Shown: piece after piece, positions 786 to 40,691 of the stretch
Numbering within the stretch: the stretch's first letter is position 1
How the letters are laid out: every line of letters starts with the position of its first letter
NCBI RefSeq assembly: GCF_000315625.1
Contig: NW_005434519.1
Location: 55,159-95,849, forward strand
From: Guillardia theta CCMP2712
Lineage: Eukaryota; Protista; Cryptophyta
Direction of reading: 5' to 3'
DNA length: 40,691 nt
The notes under the pieces: model-generated
Told to the model about the DNA's origin: nothing
What the model saw: only the letters and a program-made list of their open reading frames with translations
Databases searched by the model: none
Made by a program: the position numbers and the translations under genes

Positions 786-1946
786 GCGGCCCGGGTATAG
801 TCCAGCAACTGAGCGATAGTGCACTTAGGAGTAGAACAGATGAACAATGAAGCTAGATTTGTTGACATGCCGTTCACAAACCCATATGCAGCCCCTAGCA
901 AATCTGGTCTTTTTTTTTCTACTTTTTTCAAGTTGGGGATTCACATGGGGTCCGCCGTTATATACACTTCCTGTTGACTACCCCCTGTTTTCACCGATCA
1001 AAGGGGGGGTAGAGAGACTGGACAAATTGAACTTTGAAAAGCGGGGTGGGGTGATTTGAATTTCTCTGGCGTGGAACCCTTCCCCGGCCTTGCAAGTTGG
1101 TTTTAGAGGTACTGCAATTTTAGTTTTACCCATCACATACATGGTAGTATAGATTGTACTGTATGAAAACATATTGGTACAAACGAGAGGTTTCCTGGTA
1201 CAGAAGTTCCCCCCTCCACCACCCTACCCCCCGGGCCCTTCTTATCGGTAGTATCTCCTCACAGAGGATATTTGAATCCACAGAGAAATCCCTCCGATGC
1301 TCCGACTGATATGAATACTCACTGTTATGCGCATCCCCCAGTCATTTATGTCGCCGCATGACCGTACTCAACAGCATCCCGTCACTGTGCGCTAGCCTGA
1401 GGAACCGTAACGGGCTTCCTGCAGTCTCCTCTCCATCAGGAGATTCTGTTCCTGGAGCCGCCCCGGGTGTTCGGCCTCTGCATACTAGAGCGGACAAGGC
1501 TAGTACGTGCAAGGGCGGCCGAGTTCCGACAGTTCGGAGCCTGAGTTCGGTTCACTGAGTCAATGGCGGCGCCGACGGTCACCGTGGCAGAGTCAACCGC
1601 ACTGCCGCACGGTCATTCGGATTGATGAGTTACTGAAAGTTTTTTCAAGTTTTGTTTTTCGGCGAACGACCTGAGCCCTGTCGTTTCAACGCAGGTGACA
1701 AAGCCTGATTGACGGTGAGCTTCCGGGCCGTAGATGATAGACACATAACCTTTATTCTTTAAATTACAAGGCCTCAACGGCCGCGTTAGGAGGACCACCG
1801 GTGGCAGCCTGATAGACAAGCGGCTGACTCTGTGACAACCATGGCTCAGTCACCAACAAATCTGCGAAAAGCATCCAGTCAAGTCAACTCAAGACACAAA
1901 ACCATTGCATCGAGTCACACCTGAGAGGTAAAACCATCCCGGGCCC

Positions 1947-3221
1947 TCACGGCATAATTCCCTCCGTCGTCCACCTCCGCACCAGCCTTGCAAGATAGGA
2001 AAGCTTCTCCGCCCCTGCCGTCCTTGACTTCCTCAGGTACATGAGCGACTCCTCCGTCATCTGCTCATCCCGGCTCTTGTCGCTGGGGTTTGCTCGCATC
2101 CCCGGCGGAAGGTATCGGTTCTTGAACTGCTCGTACTCCTCAAGCGACGTCACGTCAAACGTGATCGTGTACCCATACTGCCGCCCTTGATCATCAAACA
2201 TCTTGTGTAGGGTGCACTTGAGGTGGGTCACCCCTCCCTCGCTCCCTCCCCGCGCTCGACGCATCATCCGCCAGTACCACGTCACCTCGCGATGGAAAGC
2301 CTGACACAGCAGGCTGATAACCGTGACGAGAATCTCGTACTCGCTCACTTGCAGCGGCATGTCTCGGTTCGAGTGGCGGCACAGGATCTCCGTGTGGTGA
2401 TACCCCAGCAGCTCCGCTATCTCGTCTCCCAGCTTCAGCCGCTTGCTCAGAAGATTCTCCCTGTTAATCTCCACCGACAACCAGCGCCCATGCCCCCAGT
2501 ACTCGTTGCACGCGACTCGCTCAAACTCCTCTACCACGCCCCGCTCCTGCTTGGCGACTGCCAACCCCACGTCATCGCTCGGGAGGTTCTGACCATAGTT
2601 ACTGAGCCTCCCGTACGCATGCTGTCGGCACAGCACAGCCTTGTAGTCCGGGAGGACTTTGGACTTGTCCGACATGATGTGCTTCACCCTGTCGATCCCC
2701 TCGTCCATCGATGTCTTCAGATCCAGCGGCAGGATCTTGAACGCTCTGAACAAAGTCGACGCGCTCAGCCCCAGCTCCCACAGGGCGCGCACGATGGTGA
2801 TGTTGACGCCGACCTGCAAGCACGCATGCCTGAGCGACTCCAGCGAGATCTCCTGGTCCTCCACGCTTTGGAACCACGTCTCCTTGGGGTCGCAGATCTG
2901 CGCGTAGAGCGTCGACGTATCTGACTCTGCCAGGCACTGAGCGCTCGTCCCGGCTACGATGCACATGGCGCAGGGCCGCACGTTGCTGCACTTGCGCTTC
3001 TTCTGACGGCACTCGGAGCACGAGTTGGTGATGTACTTGGATCGCTTGCGACGAGGCTCCAGCCTTACAGCAAGAGCGTCCACAGCGACGTTGGGGTCGA
3101 CGAGAGGCTCGCAGTCGAGGGAGCAGGATGGCGGGGAGTGAGAGACGGCTGGGAGGTGGAGGGACCTCTCAAGGCTCTGAGCAGTCGCGGAGTTGAGTGC
3201 GGATAGCTGTTCAGCCATCAT
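1947..3221 (-). CDS. Zn(II)2Cys6 binuclear-cluster transcription factor with C-terminal PAS/PAC-like region, copy 1
   Basis: S-C-SE-C-RQKKRK-C-SNVRP-C-AM-C-IVAGTSAQ-C (2934-3020) fits the C-x2-C-x6-C-x5-C-x2-C-x8-C Gal4-type pattern. AELLGYHHTEILCR and FDDQGRQYGYTITFDVT resemble PAS/PAC signatures. First ATG is at 3221; a possible acceptor (tttgacag, 3242) could add a 5' exon. Confidence 0.85.
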   Translation of the reverse strand: MMAEQLSALNSATAQSLERSLHLPAVSHSPPSCSLDCEPLVDPNVAVDALAVRLEPRRKRSKYITNSCSECRQKKRKCSNVRPCAMCIVAGTSAQCLAESDTSTLYAQICDPKETWFQSVEDQEISLESLRHACLQVGVNITIVRALWELGLSASTLFRAFKILPLDLKTSMDEGIDRVKHIMSDKSKVLPDYKAVLCRQHAYGRLSNYGQNLPSDDVGLAVAKQERGVVEEFERVACNEYWGHGRWLSVEINRENLLSKRLKLGDEIAELLGYHHTEILCRHSNRDMPLQVSEYEILVTVISLLCQAFHREVTWYWRMMRRARGGSEGGVTHLKCTLHKMFDDQGRQYGYTITFDVTSLEEYEQFKNRYLPPGMRANPSDKSRDEQMTEESLMYLRKSRTAGAEKLSYLARLVRRWTTEGIMP

Positions 3222-3756
3222 CAAGCACCAATCGTCATCGTCTGTCAAACAATCAAAAACCAGCGTGTCTGTATGTTGTATTCTTTGAAACCTTTTATAT
3301 CCCGTTTCTCTTCGAGGTTGGAACGGATCATCCCAGTTGATTCTTTGATAAAAGATTAGTGTTCAGCAGCTTATAAAACGTTTTCCTTTTACTAATTGCT
3401 ATATTCTTTTTGTTTGTTTTCAGAGACAACTCCTCAGGGGAGGGTTTGGTTCGCTGGTATCGATCCAAGTGAGCTAAACACTACTAAAGACACAACTATC
3501 TCACTGTCAGCCTGAGTTTAAGTACTGATTGAGCAAATAAAACTCAAGTCACACTGCATGATAACATACAAGAGGCAATCTTCCACGTGCGATTCAAACC
3601 AACACAAACTAAAATGAGGTATCTGAACGCAGGACGTTCTGTTTTGAGCATGACCATGTTCTTTCCTTCAATTCTTTCAAGTGTATGAAACAACCTTGCA
3701 TTCACCTTATTCTCTTCTCCTTTGTTTGCGCCCACCTCTTCTCCATCTTGACATGT

Positions 3757-4412
3757 TCTCTCTCTCTCTCTCTCTCGCTCGCTCTCCTACAGCTCTCTCG
3801 CCTCTCTGCATTGCCTCACTTCGCCTCAGAGGAACCCGGCGGGCTGCTTCCCAAAACGGTGAACATCCCATCCCTGCGGTACAGATTTTTAGGTCAATAA
3901 CAAGCGACTGGCAACTTCGGACGGGATTCCGAGTTCCGATGACCGGGCCCGGCCAAGCGGCCCGGACTGCACTCACTGGTCAAAACAATAATACATAATA
4001 AAATACCTACTATAATAAATGAACCCCATCCCTTGATTTTTACTTAACATTCCATGAGCAGAAAATGATGACGTGGGAGGGGCCATCGCTCGTTATGTTA
4101 AATATGTTCCTGCCCACGTCCCCCCTCAGCGAAGTTGAGCTAAAAAAGATTGGTTTTGGACCCCTCTAAATGATGTCGTTTGTGTGAGTAATGGAGGGGT
4201 AGGGGTGGTTCTATCAATGAAAATGGAAAAGGGTTCTGCAATTGCTGACAGACTTCGGAATGCACAGAAGTAAAGCTCTCCGAAAGGATGCAGGTTTAAT
4301 ATGAACCTCGTGATCATTCATCCAGCCCGCCCCACAGACTGAACCAAAACAAAAATGAGGCAGTGAACGAATGTTACCAGAGTTGTACTCTACAAGAAAT
4401 GCACTGAGGTGG
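3757..4412 (+). repeat. Dispersed direct repeat, copy B (partner 88-785)
   Basis: Begins with (TC)n, then the same blocks in the same order as copy A; lies between the two divergent Zn-cluster genes. Confidence 0.92.
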
Positions 4413-4914
4413 CCAATTCGGATTGCTGACAGAATACTACGAACCGTTGAGTTTCTCAATTACAAACTCGTGACTCTCGGAATTTCTCTTGGGACTTAAA
4501 GTGCTTTAGTAAACCTCTCCCACCGTCCGACCTCCTCTTCCGCTGCCTTCCCATCTAAATCCGCTCCTGCTGTTTGTTTACCTAGCGCTGTTCTATCTTG
4601 CTTCTTGTTGCAGAAATGCTCCTCGAACCATGCCTTTACTTTCGCAGTAACCTAACTGTCTTGAAATCATCCCCCTCTGCCATGTGTACCAAAAGCTCAC
4701 TAACTTCACTGCAAATTATCCAAATCATGCACTAATTGTCCTATGAATCTTGACACTGAAATTTCGACTTGCAGAAACAAGAAAATTTTCCTTCCAAAAA
4801 ATAATACCTCATCTGTTGGTGGTAAAATTTGAAGCAGAACCAAAATCGTAAGGTAGATTTAAGATGCAACTCAGAATCTATCATTGACTTGAATTGAAAA
4901 CAGGGGGAAACAAA

Positions 4915-6267
4915 ATGATGCTTCATACTGCCCCATGCGAGTTTCCACAGAAGCGTCTCTGCTCTGAGTTCCTCGATCATGACGATTGGTGCTTGATGAT
5001 GGCTGAACAGCTATCCGCACTCAACTCCGCGACTGCTCAGAGCCTTGAGAGGTCCCTCCATCTCCCAGCCGTCTCTCACTTCCCGCCATCCTGCTCCCTC
5101 GACTGCGAGAATTTCTTCGACCCCAACGTCGCTGTGGACGCTCTTGCTGTAAGGCTGGAGCCTCGTCGCAAGCGATCCAAGTACATCACCAACTCGTGCT
5201 CCGAGTGTCGTCAGAAGAAGCGCAAGTGCAGCAACGTGCGGCCCTGCGCCATGTGCATCATAGCCGGGACGAGCGCTCAGTGCCTGGCAGAGTCAGATAC
5301 GTCGACGCTCTACGCGCAGATCTGCGACCCCAAGGAGACGTGGTTCCAAAGCGTGGAGGACCAGGAGATCTCGCTGGAGTCGCTCAGGCATGCGTGCTTG
5401 CAGGTCGGCGTCAACATCACCATCGTGCGCGCCATGTGGGAGCTGGGGCTGAGCGCGTCGACTTTGTTCAGAGCGTTCAAGATCCTGCCGCTGGATCTGA
5501 AGACATCGATGGACGAGGGGATCGACAGGGTGAGGCACATCATGTCGGACAAGTCCAAAGTCCTCCCGGACTACAAGGCTGTGCTGTGCCGACAGCATGC
5601 GTACGGGAGGCTCAGTAACTATGGTCAGAACCTCCCGAGCGATGACGTGGGGTTGGCAGTCGCCAAGCAGGAGCGGGGCGTGGTAGAGGAGTTTGAGCGA
5701 GTAGCGTGCAACGAGTACTGGGGGCATGGGCGCTGGTTGTCTATGGAATTTGATCGAGAGAATCTTCTGAGCAAGCGGCTGAAGCTGGGAGACGAGATAG
5801 CAGAGCTGCTGGGGTATCACCACACGGAGATCCTGTGTCGCCACTCGAACCGAGACATGCTGCTGCAAGTGAGCGAGTACGAGATTCTCGTCACGATCAT
5901 CAACCTGCTGTGTCAGTCGTTCCATCGCGAGGTGACGTGGTATTGGCGGCTGATGCGTCGAGCTCCGGGAGGGAGCGAGGGAGGGGTGACGTACCTCAAG
6001 TGCACCCTACACAAGATGTTTGATGATCAAGGGCGGCAGTATGGGTACACGATCACGTTTGACGTGACGTCGCTCGAGGAGTACGAGCAGTTCAAGAACC
6101 GATACCTTCCGCCGGGGATGCGAGCGAACAGCGACAAGAGCCTGGAGGAGCAGATGTCGAAGGAGACGCTCATGTACCTGAGGAAGTCAAGGACGGCAGG
6201 GGCGGAGAAGCTTTCCTATCTTGCAAGGCTGGTGCGGAGGTGGACGACGGAGGGAATCATCCCGTGA
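4915..6267 (+). CDS. Zn(II)2Cys6 transcription factor with C-terminal PAS/PAC-like region, copy 2
   Basis: Zn cluster at 5197-5283; PAS-like region about 5734-6069; ~94% amino-acid identity to the 1947-3221 product by manual comparison. Start is either ATG 4915 or the shared MMAEQ start at ~4996. Confidence 0.85.
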   Translation: MMLHTAPCEFPQKRLCSEFLDHDDWCLMMAEQLSALNSATAQSLERSLHLPAVSHFPPSCSLDCENFFDPNVAVDALAVRLEPRRKRSKYITNSCSECRQKKRKCSNVRPCAMCIIAGTSAQCLAESDTSTLYAQICDPKETWFQSVEDQEISLESLRHACLQVGVNITIVRAMWELGLSASTLFRAFKILPLDLKTSMDEGIDRVRHIMSDKSKVLPDYKAVLCRQHAYGRLSNYGQNLPSDDVGLAVAKQERGVVEEFERVACNEYWGHGRWLSMEFDRENLLSKRLKLGDEIAELLGYHHTEILCRHSNRDMLLQVSEYEILVTIINLLCQSFHREVTWYWRLMRRAPGGSEGGVTYLKCTLHKMFDDQGRQYGYTITFDVTSLEEYEQFKNRYLPPGMRANSDKSLEEQMSKETLMYLRKSRTAGAEKLSYLARLVRRWTTEGIIP

Positions 6268-6907
6268 GGAATTTGATTTTATCTTTCGTGACAGTTAGCG
6301 ATTTGATGATGATGGTTTTCGTGTGTTTCCACCGACATTCCTGAAGGTTTGACATTTCAGTTTTCAGCACTTGAATCGTAAGGTCAAGGAGACTGTTGTG
6401 ACTTAGATTTTATGATTTTTATAGATTGATAATATAAAGCATGTTTACACTGAAGTGTGTATTTGGTAGTGGGTTGCTTGTTGCAAAACTCATGCAAGGG
6501 TAGAAATGCATGATTGTTGTCAACTTGATGCTTTTTCACTTCTTGCCTATTTTCGAGATACATCTGTTGACGTGTACGCATGATTTCAGCTCATCAAAAT
6601 TTCTCAGACTTCCATGAGTTCATTTGTTTTGTTTTGTTTTCACGGTTTACTTTCTTTGCTTGCAGTAATAATTTCTTTGTTTTCTATCAGTTTATGAGTG
6701 TTCTTTGTCTATCTCTCCGTTCAGTCTCTGATCTTGTTAAGCTTTATGTCAACACGCTCTTGTGAGATCCAATTCTCCGCGGCTTTGGCAAGAGAGCTCC
6801 TTCTGAAACCACAACATTTCCATCTTCCTTTCTTCCCCCCCCCGCCAACTCGTCAAGTTTCCTGCATTGCAATCAGGCGCTCTCAACCAAACCTCCGCCA
6901 AACAGCA

Positions 6908-7218
6908 TCACATGCTCGGCCCTAAGTAGCTTCTTGTTGAGTCGACATGAATATCCATGTCATTGCCATTGTCCGTGTCCTTGTACTTATCCTGTCAGCA
7001 GGTTGAGCAAAGAGCGCTGACGTGCATTGTAACCTCAACGCCCAGCACATGCTTGTCAATGATGGTTCTTAGCTTACTCTTCTTCTGCTCGTTTGACAGC
7101 CCCGAGTGCCACTCCCAGTACGGCATCGAGAAGAGCTTGTAGCCGATCGCCTGCTGGCCGTCAATTGACTCCCTTACCCTCTTCCCCCTCCCCTTGCCTA
7201 CTTTCCTCCCCCTACCTC

Positions 7219-7291
<73 letters not shown>

Positions 7292-10200
7292 CCCTGTCCC
7301 TGTCCCTGTCCCTGTCCTCCCTCGATCTCCCTCTTTGCCTTCTTCCTCTGCTTCATTACTGACCTGCAGTTGCCTCCTCTTCATCAATGTCCGACCTAGC
7401 GGTATTTTGCTTCCTCTGGCGAAATGTGAAGGCCCGTCAACCTGTCAAGGTTGTGAGTGCATGCAAGGCAGAGAGAAAGGAGTAGAAGACAAGGAACAAG
7501 GGATGAGGTGGTGGTGAAGAAGAAGCAGGAATACGACAAGAGGAAGGAGCAGGAGAGGGACAAGGGTAAGAAGAAGGAGGAGGAGGATGAAGATACCTCG
7601 ATGGCGAAGGAAGCAGCAGCGATCGAGATGTCTAGGGAGTAGCTTGTAACGCGCTCAATCGTCTCCTCCTCAAGGGTCCAACTTTGATCCACCACTCTCT
7701 GCTCTTGAAGCTCCTTCCACACCACCCTCAACGTGTCCGCCACGTTCCTCTGCAGCCCGGACATGGCATCGGGCAGGAGGACGTCCGACGTAGCCGCTGC
7801 TCCCTTGTCTGTCAGGGTCATCGTCCCCTGCATGCCCGCGAGTTTGGAGGAGGAGAGGAGAGCGCGCTGGGTTGCGTGCCAGGCCTGCTCAATTCTTTTG
7901 CGGTGCTGCAGGAGACTGTCAAGCTCCGGGAGCTCCTTCTTGGGTACGAGACCCTCGACCTACGACAAGAGAGAGGCAAGGAGTCACGTCAGATGAGAGT
8001 AACAGTCGGAGCAGGAAGAGAAAGAGGAGGTGGAGGGAGGAACCTCGATGGCGAGGATGTACTGATGCAGCTGACTGAGCGCGTTGCCGTCCATGGAAGA
8101 AATCTGCGACAAGCAGGACGAGCAGATCCATCGATTGAGCGTCGGGTCGGAGATCTGCATGACGCATAAAAGGGTGAAAAAAATTAGAGGAAGGAGAGGA
8201 CAGGAGAAGACAGGAGAGGAGTTGAGAAGACACGAGAGGAGAGGAGAGGAGCGGAGAGGAGCGGAGAGGAGCGGAGAGGAGGAGGAGAGGAGAGGAGAGG
8301 AGAGGAGAGGAGGAGGAGGAGGAGAGGAGAGGAGACGGGAGGGGAGTGGAGGAGAGGAGAGGAAAGGAGAGGGAGACGGGAGGGGAGGGGAGGGGAGGGG
8401 TGGGGGGAGAGAGGAGAGTAGAGAGAGAGAGGAGAGGAGAGGAGAGGAGAGGANNNNNNNNNNNNNNNNNNNNNNNNNNNNNNNNNNNNNNNNNNNNNNN
8501 NNNNNNNNNNNNNNNNNNNNNNNNNNNNNNNNNNNNNNNNNNNNNNNNNNNNNCCAGAGCAGGAGAGGAGAGGAGAGGAGAGGAGAGGAGAGGAGAGGAG
8601 AGAAGAGGAGAGGAGAGGAGAGGAGAGGAAAAGAGACGAGGCGAGACGAGACGAGACGCTGGGAAGGAAGGGGAGAAAAGGCGAGGACACGATGTTTGAG
8701 ACCTTGAGGACTGCGATTGACCAGGCAATGTTCGAAAGTGCCTGAGCGTTGAAGTCTTTGGCCTGCATCATGGTCTGCCGGGAGCGGAGGAGAGTCGTTG
8801 CGACATGCCCCAGCAGCTCGCTGTCTTCCACGTTGAGTACAGCGAGAGCATGAAAGATGTTGGCGATCGCGTGCGCATCGAAGGCGGATGGCGACATGTC
8901 CTGCACGTCATCAGAGCCGCGCGTGAGCAGGAGCGCTTCCTACCATGGCGACCTTGGAGAGCCTCCGGAGAAGGGGGAGGTCGCGTATCCTGAGCTGCGC
9001 GTATGCGTTGAGCAGGATGCCGATCTTGGAGGCTTCGAACTGATGGGCAGACATGGCCTGGAGGAGGAGCGACATGTGGCCGAACAGCTCGGCGTCATGC
9101 ACGTGCGCCTTGGCAAAGGCGTTGACGATGTTGACCACGTCCTGAGGGCTGCAAGGAATCTCGAAGTTCCTCTGGCCCATCTGCTGCGCCACGCGGCTGA
9201 GGTGAGCAAACATGCAGCTGTCCTGCATGCCGAGCTTGGCGAAGGCGTTGACGATGAGCGCGACGCCCTGCGCGGAGAACTGCTGCTCGGAGAGACCCGT
9301 GACTATGCGAGCCTGCCAGAGCTTGAGCGTCTACCTCCCTTCCCACCATCAAGGGAGACGAGGGCAAAGTGAAGAGAGACAGGAAGGAGGAGGAAGCAGG
9401 GGAGGAATGAGCCGCACCAGACGTCGGAACAAAGTTTTGAGCGAGGTGTAGGCTGCAGGAGCAGCATCTGCGTATCTAGTCCACGCCTGAAAGCAGAGTC
9501 ATCTGCTTGTCTTCCCTCGCTCCCTCTCTCTACACCTGCGTGTTCTTGGCAAACGCGTTGACGATGTTGGCGATGCTCTGAGCATCGAAATCTTGATCCG
9601 GAATCTCCATGCACAAGAAGCACATGCGGCGGAAGAGAGCATGATCTCTCTCGCCATTCTGATTGGAATCAGAGGCTGGAGGGACGGCAGCAAGTCACCT
9701 TGGCGAAGGCGTTGGCGAGCATGGCAATGGTCTGAGAGGAGAAGGCAGGGGGAGGCAGAAGCATCGCCTGTTGTGAGATCCACCTACTCGACATAGTCAG
9801 CAGAAGTTCAGAGAATGGGAGAGAAAGAGAAGCAGGCAGGAGAGATGAAGTAGCAGAAGAACGGGGAACAGGAAAGACAAGAAGCTGAGCCCCATGGAGT
9901 GGGCAGGGAGGAAGGAGGAGAAAGGGAAGGATATGAACGAAAAAGACATCAAACCTGAAGAGAGTTGAATCTTTTAATTCTGCCTGAGGTCGGTCCAATT
10001 TCAGCAACAAGAGATTGATGTGGAAGGAGGGTAACTAGTGTTGTCTCCTGCTTTCTCAAACCTCCTTGTACTCGTACCGTCCCTCCTTCCTCCTTCCTCC
10101 TCCTTCTTCCTTCAATCATCCTCCTTTCTCTTTCTTCTTCCTTCAATCATCCTCCTTCCTCCTCCTTCCTCTTGATGCTCATCTTCTCAATCCCTTACCT

Positions 10201-32429: not shown

Positions 32430-40691
<8,262 letters not shown>

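Follow-up and report, generated by a model that had tools for sequence, protein, structure and literature searches.

To our knowledge, the transcription factors of cryptophytes are essentially unstudied. Aureochromes, the bZIP-LOV photoreceptor transcription factors of stramenopile algae, carry a DNA-binding domain N-terminal to their PAS/LOV domain. In fungi, a Zn2Cys6 cluster is combined with a PAS domain in the regulators AcuK/AcuM (Aspergillus), Rds2/Ert1/Gsm1 (yeast), Aod2/Aod5 (Neurospora), and Pas2/Rds2 (Cryptococcus) (PMC12719309). These factors depend on their PAS domain, for which a role in heterodimerisation has been proposed; when it is mutated, the two partners of the heterodimer lose their joint function, and it has no known ligand (PMC12719309). 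Zn_clus ("Fungal TRF") factors also occur in haptophyte and stramenopile algae (PMC4827209). Here, we describe two genes from the cryptophyte alga Guillardia theta CCMP2712, each encoding a Gal4-type Zn2Cys6 cluster followed by a predicted PAS-fold domain. They are located in a stretch of 40,691 nucleotides (G000:C155:55159-95849), hereafter referred to as the window.

The two genes, copy 1 and copy 2, appear as head-to-head open reading frames (ORFs) at positions 1947-3248 (- strand) and 4894-6267 (+ strand), as described in an earlier note made from the sequence alone; the gene encodes about 444 amino acids. The two proteins are 94% identical, and the corresponding DNA forms an inverted repeat (1945-3238 versus 4979-6269, 95-97% complementary). 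Copy 1 is GUITHDRAFT_119712 and is 100% identical to database entry P0001 (444 amino acids), under which its spliced product was analysed, while the window itself was searched via the main exon. A third copy, 96% identical, was found 5.4 kb upstream of copy 1, beyond the limits of the window (G000:C155:51750-53048); it shares the strand of copy 1, so that the locus consists of a tandem pair and one head-to-head copy. The frames of all three copies were intact. Overall, copies 1 and 2 are probably recently duplicated members of a large cryptophyte family of one-polypeptide Zn2Cys6-PAS transcription factors, whose activity would be set by the PAS domain and which would not be flavin-binding LOV photoreceptors.

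Both copies carry CSECRQKKRKCSNVRPCAMCI[VI]AGTSAQC, and the cluster sequence, CSECRQKKRKCSNVRPCAMCIVAGTSAQC, has the spacing CX2CX6CX5CX2CX8C, in line with the Gal4-type six-cysteine pattern (CX2CX6CX5-12CX2CX6-8C). The cut-off of the Pfam model Zn_clus (PF00172), set at 21 bits, was exceeded by copy 1 and copy 2, with E values of 8e-6 and 2.5e-5, respectively (scores in Table 1). The six cysteines were invariant in 18 paralogues, as were K95, located between the second and third cysteines, and the loop proline P103. The perfect Gal4-type cluster announced in the earlier note is thus confirmed. When a family profile was compared with the PDB, all matches to the cluster region were Zn2Cys6 DNA-binding domains, namely those of Pho7, Hap1, Gal4, Put3, and Lac9. 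The cluster, which is preceded by a basic stretch, RRKRSKY, was the most conserved part of the protein among paralogues, with a mean identity of 45%, while the PAS domain averaged 29% and the intervening linker 26%. The earlier note also presented the locus as a case of a fungal-type cluster in an alga. The cluster and its cryptophyte host were both verified; Zn_clus factors had previously been reported in haptophytes and stramenopiles, and a fungal-type cluster in an alga is therefore not new per se (PMC4827209). Those factors resemble the present proteins in having Gal4-type clusters in non-fungal algae; however, the survey that described them included no cryptophyte genome, and no PAS partner domain was reported for them (PMC4827209).

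The C-terminal domain was modelled with AlphaFold2, without templates, on residues 255-395 of P0001, using a 111-sequence alignment of the PAS-like domain (A7) built from exhaustive HMMER matches. The model reached a predicted local distance difference test score (pLDDT) of 91.8 and a predicted template modelling score (pTM) of 0.83. Its predicted topology, ββ-ααα-βββ followed by a C-terminal helix, corresponds to a five-stranded antiparallel PAS-type sheet (strands E13-18 and E25-30; helices H34-38, H42-50, and H60-72; strands E78-86, E97-108, and E114-124). A structure prediction lacking such a sheet, together with profile searches free of any PAS/GAF match, had been set beforehand as the outcome that would overturn the PAS assignment; the fold was instead predicted with confidence, and its top structural matches were all PAS or LOV domains. 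A Foldseek search of the PDB gave 81 matches at E<=1e-3, the top 50 of which were all PAS/LOV, with template modelling (TM) scores of about 0.6. An independent search with VIA-align against 48,161 representative chains gave 37 matches with Z>=8, again with only PAS/LOV domains in the top 50; the best of these was the LOV domain of aureochrome-1a (6i21; Z 10.9, 123 residues aligned, root-mean-square deviation 3.2). All ten rows returned by a shape search of the ESM Atlas were PAS, and the language-model neighbours of the domain included PAS_3, PAS_9, and MEKHLA clusters. These models support the assignment of the C-terminal domain to a highly divergent PAS fold.

At the sequence level, the A7 profile matched the hERG PAS domain (1byw) in the PDB over nearly its whole length with an E value of 0.0039, and 21 of the 22 weak matches were PAS domains, including that of EPAS1 (E about 0.3). 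This weak signal emerged because the deep 111-sequence profile was used; shallow profiles of 8 and 17 sequences returned Zn-cluster matches or none, and no PAS domain, from the PDB. The PAS-like string EIAELLGYHHTEILCR and the PAC-like string WYWR..GGVTYLKCTLHKMFDDQGRQYGYTITFDVT, both reported previously for copy 2, were found where described; the former maps to the helices after strand B of the model and the latter corresponds to its last two β strands. The family shares the signature N-x3-A-x-L-x-G-[ML]-H-x-E-E-L-L-A-R, represented in the PAS core of P0001 by the conserved block G293/H295/E298/R302. Within this signature, almost no variation was seen at Glu298 and Arg302, whereas 83 of the 111 sequences carry His295.

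From the N- to the C-terminus, the protein would thus be composed of a variable N-terminus, the basic stretch, the Zn2Cys6 cluster, a family-specific helical linker, the PAS domain with its N-cap and C-terminal helix, and a short helical tail. For the linker (residues 125-254), searches of Pfam, the PDB, and the Atlas gave no real relative; its lone PDB match, a designed helical bundle with an E value of 0.005, was not taken as one. A full-length AlphaFold2 model based on 8 sequences was of low confidence (pLDDT 49) and was used for secondary structure only.

The combination of Zn2Cys6 and PAS parallels that of fungal Rds2/Ert1/AcuK/AcuM. As in those proteins, an N-terminal Gal4-type cluster is followed by a single PAS domain further towards the C-terminus; the parallel with yeast Rds2/Ert1/Gsm1 drawn in the earlier note therefore stands, both domains and their order being shared (PMC12719309). 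In addition, the PAS-core box N....G....E.L.R is shared with Cryptococcus Pas2, which reads NPEFCELVGKTDNELLSR where the cryptophyte protein reads GDEIAELLGYHHTEILCR, and several paralogues per genome are found in both groups. However, the two differ in more than their hosts, a cryptophyte here and fungi for AcuK/AcuM/Rds2. Unlike that of the fungal proteins, the cryptophyte PAS domain is invisible to Pfam, and the helical linker has no known counterpart. The distance from cluster to PAS domain is about 190 residues in the cryptophyte family versus roughly 300-450 in the fungal proteins, and members number at least 57 in G. theta versus 2-3 in fungi. The AcuK/AcuM/Rds2/Ert1 family is further characterised as obligately heterodimeric, with two paralogues acting together on gluconeogenic or alternative-oxidase genes. 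No fungal Zn-PAS member was retrieved by two word-indexed searches, in which the best fungal match was an Aspergillus Zn_clus/Fungal_trans protein, aligned over the Zn cluster alone with an E value of 0.25 that is uninformative on homology. The new elements are the cryptic PAS domain, the unique linker, and the large lineage-specific expansion; the Zn2Cys6-PAS kind itself is known from fungi.

Aureochromes provided the best structural match, which extended over the N-cap and over the helix at the C-terminal end (6i21, Z 10.9; 3ulf, Z 9.9), and share with the cryptophyte proteins the effector-then-sensor order, in which the DNA-binding domain is N-terminal to PAS. In contrast, the DNA-binding domain is Zn2Cys6 rather than bZIP, neither the flavin-binding motif nor the photoactive cysteine is present, and identity is only 12%. 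Cofactor-free eukaryotic PAS domains (hERG/EAG N-terminal, HIF-2alpha/AhR PAS-B) were the sole sequence-level PDB matches of the family profile and were also strong structural matches, but they occur in channel or bHLH contexts and their identity is marginal (14-19%).

When the region following the cluster was used as the query of an exhaustive HMMER search, 340 cluster representatives were obtained at E<=1e-3, the best 150 of which were inspected. In 30 relatives that were looked up, the organism-labelled clusters were all cryptophyte (Guillardia, Hanusia phi, Rhodomonas abbreviata, and Teleaulax amphioxeia); several relatives came from transcriptomes, and the remaining clusters were unlabelled environmental sequences. 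In the G. theta genome, where all counts are lower bounds, the PAS-domain profile matched at least 72 places, at least 57 of them with E<1e-16, and cross-tabulation placed a Zn cluster 0.4-1.1 kb upstream of at least 49 of these 57 strong loci. Zn_clus matches were found in at least 143 places. The census proposed in the earlier note thus returned at least 57 strong PAS-like loci in G. theta and labelled relatives from four cryptophyte genera. Identity within the cryptophyte family ranged from 20 to 50%, and members were grouped locally in G. theta, often as tandem or head-to-head pairs. In nearly all of them, the region from the Zn cluster through the PAS domain was contained within one uninterrupted ORF. 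The family had been suspected to be uncharacterised in this lineage, and indeed we found no paper on a cryptophyte Zn2Cys6-PAS family. Its proteins bear only automatic database labels, either "Zn(2)-C6 fungal-type domain-containing" or "hypothetical", none of which mentions PAS; P0001 itself is named merely "Zn(2)-C6 fungal-type domain-containing protein" in UniRef.

Copy 1 is transcribed, spliced, and polyadenylated. Matching contigs were obtained from three runs in three studies, whose type was taken to be RNA by guess only; these contigs show spliced forms (GT..AG joints, - strand) and are therefore RNA-derived, which demonstrates that the copy 1 transcript is produced and processed. Removal of the 5' intron yields the P0001 N-terminus, MIRSNLEEKRDIK, exactly, and the two coding exons (40 + 1292 nucleotides) make up 444 codons. 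A loose poly-T contig end marked the poly(A) tail near position 1735. The introns seen in copy 1 were the small 5' coding intron and one in the 3' untranslated region (UTR). The intergenic region between the head-to-head copies presumably contains the promoters and 5' UTRs of both. The coordinates of these features are listed in Table 1.

Table 1. Features of the two Zn2Cys6-PAS gene copies, with positions given in the window. A8 is a 43-sequence alignment; AF2, AlphaFold2.
Feature	Position	Strand	Evidence
Copy 1, 3' UTR intron, 59 nucleotides	1862..1920	-	Contig joints
Copy 1, main coding exon (stop codon 1947-1949 included)	1947..3241	-	ORF; 100% to P0001; RNA-derived contigs, 0 differences
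Copy 1, conserved C-terminal helical tail (..MRKS..G.EKLS.L..)	1950..2096	-	Alignments; helices at pLDDT about 72-78 in full-length model
Copy 1, predicted PAS-fold domain with N-cap and C-terminal helix (P0001 255-395)	2097..2519	-	AF2; Foldseek, VIA-align, and Atlas all PAS/LOV
Copy 1, conserved helical linker (motif GVNxxLVRxxWELG...AFxxLPxDLKxAIDE)	2520..2909	-	Alignments A2 and A8; helical in low-confidence full-length model
Copy 1, Zn2Cys6 cluster (C77-C105 of 433-amino-acid ORF)	2934..3020	-	Pfam PF00172, 26.2 bits; profile alignment to Pho7, Hap1, Gal4, Put3
Copy 1, 5' intron, 50 nucleotides, GT..AG	3242..3291	-	Joint 3241/3292 in contigs of three runs, three studies
Copy 1, first coding exon, 40 nucleotides (ATG 3329-3331)	3292..3331	-	Sequence read and spliced contigs
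Divergent intergenic region between head-to-head copies	3332..4893		Geometry; RNA contig at 3366-3748
Copy 2, ORF	4894..6267	+	Intact; first ATG 4915; 5' end diverges from copy 1 upstream of 4979
Copy 2, Zn2Cys6 cluster	5197..5283	+	Pfam PF00172, 24.7 bits
Copy 2, predicted PAS-fold domain, homologous to copy 1 2097-2519	5698..6120	+	94% identity; own-genome profile match C155:60859-61269, E 4e-36

The interpretation is supported for the architecture, whereas that of the function is inferential. The proteins are most likely sequence-specific transcription factors whose activity is set through the PAS domain. The Zn cluster would bind CGG-type DNA sites, and the PAS domain would control activity within the same polypeptide, through a bound small molecule or through the choice of dimer partner among the many paralogues. 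The signal would then travel through the flanking helices to the DNA-binding part, which, as in aureochromes and AcuK/AcuM, is positioned N-terminal to PAS. The PAS domain may act as a ligand, redox, or metabolite sensor, as the earlier note had suggested; we infer this role only from the fold, because fungal PAS domains have mainly been implicated in heterodimerisation. A more far-reaching and rather doubtful possibility is that the dozens of Zn2Cys6-PAS paralogues constitute the main layer connecting environment to genes in cryptophytes, a one-component, nuclear-receptor-like system assembled independently of AcuK/AcuM. Its PAS domains, from a lineage diverged to the point of escaping domain databases, would then each respond to a metabolite or partner of their own.

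With at least 57 PAS-like loci in G. theta, at least 49 of them with a Zn cluster, the family may be among the largest regulator families of this alga, and the PAS pocket, together with the conserved G-[ML]-H-x-E-E-L-L-A-R block, would offer a handle on the signals sensed by cryptophytes. Another question prompted by the family is whether the Zn2Cys6-PAS architecture dates far back or evolved twice, in fungi and in cryptophytes. The family also indicates that eukaryotic PAS domains are undercounted by Pfam-based censuses.

Several observations weigh against the reading of these genes as PAS-controlled transcription factors. Pfam PAS models gave no significant match, either to the protein or to the corresponding domains of 17 paralogues, and in a Pfam scan PAS_3 touched only 1 of 134 relatives (E 0.0024). 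The profile evidence sought by the earlier note is thus divided between the weak hERG match and the silence of Pfam; since Pfam PAS models are nearly blind to the domain, its assignment derives mainly from predicted structure. The domain showed no recognisable residues for binding a cofactor or ligand. RNA coverage of copy 2 was almost nil, with a few sense reads from one raw-read RNA run at 5886-6500. Among the three local copies, the ratio of nonsynonymous to synonymous substitutions (dN/dS) was 0.38-0.66, calculated from 26-42 substitutions; values of 0.4-0.7 in young copies indicate that constraint is rather relaxed but still present. A homodimer prediction on residues 125-444 of P0001 was counted among these points but weighs neither way (score 0.00), as the alignment was unused and the partner fold uncertain.

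The PAS domain could also be a pure protein-protein interface that chooses homo- or heterodimer partners without sensing any small molecule, regulation being exerted by expression level or partner availability. This has an appreciable chance of being correct, albeit short of even: such a role has been proposed for AcuK-AcuM and Aod2-Aod5, in which the fungal mutations described above abolish pair function with no ligand known (PMC12719309), combinatorial dimers could form among the numerous paralogues, which often occur as local pairs, and no conserved cofactor residues were found. However, ligand binding and dimer control are commonly combined in PAS domains, and the conserved block N..A.L.G[ML]H.EELLAR lies in helices that line the ligand pocket of other PAS domains; the homodimer prediction gave no answer here either. 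A very different proposal, that of a LOV-type blue-light flavin photoreceptor forming a zinc-cluster counterpart of aureochrome, would account for the best structural matches, which were aureochrome and other LOV domains with both flanking helices included, and for the aureochrome-like position of the DNA-binding domain. We rejected it as extremely improbable, because the GXNCRFLQ motif with its adduct-forming cysteine is absent from all fetched members. About 230 family proteins were fetched, and none contained an NCRFLQ-like motif, which extends to the whole fetched family the absence reported for this locus. Moreover, the photoactive-cysteine column, located via the hERG alignment, was Ala or Gly in 89 of the 111 sequences and Ser304 in P0001, and identity to LOV domains was 10-16%.

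The relaxed dN/dS, based on few substitutions, and the near-absence of copy 2 RNA would also be expected if the copies were decaying or non-functional duplicates, annotation artefacts, or pseudogenes of a once-functional family, of which one locus (C172) does contain in-frame stops. We judged this unlikely from the RNA evidence for copy 1 and from the dN/dS analysis with intact frames: full ORFs are kept in all three copies, spliced and polyadenylated copy 1 transcripts occur in runs of three studies, and domain residues are conserved over four genera. The domain pair and order shared with fungi, along with an almost intronless coding region, would fit a recent horizontal transfer of an AcuK/AcuM/Rds2-type gene from a fungus, but this origin is very unlikely. 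Apart from the Zn-cluster match with an E value of 0.25, word-indexed searches returned no fungal protein, and in the sample of 30 exhaustive-search matches no cluster with an organism label was fungal; in addition, the family has many members in cryptophytes, with deep divergence among them (20-50% identity), and its linker domain is matchless in Pfam, the PDB, and the Atlas.

Other members and relatives of the family in G. theta showed variations on this arrangement. On another contig, a head-to-head pair of P0004-like genes with equal frames of 472 amino acids was observed (G000:C20:38014-39156 (-) and 41127-42257 (+)), which suggests that inverted local duplication is recurrent in the family. 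Two loci (L018:1037-2107 and L019:788-2068, on G000:C18 and C250, respectively) exhibited two tandem Zn2Cys6 clusters ahead of the PAS-like domain and lacked the C-terminal tail. The PAS-like match at G000:C172:2483-2890 contained two in-frame TAG stops and is probably a pseudogene. A separate Zn-cluster subfamily, with no PAS-like match among those listed, formed an array of eight tandem units of ~2.4 kb (G000:C73:286329-303734), in which each ORF (205-335 amino acids) had two Zn_clus matches of identical score. Finally, the window contains microsatellites, (TGTC)n at 1-103, (CCTGTC)n at 7215-7317, (AGAGG)n at 8186-8453, (GAT)n at 34674-34913, and (AGC)n at 39546-39724, which account for the GC/AT-skew spikes of its composition profile.

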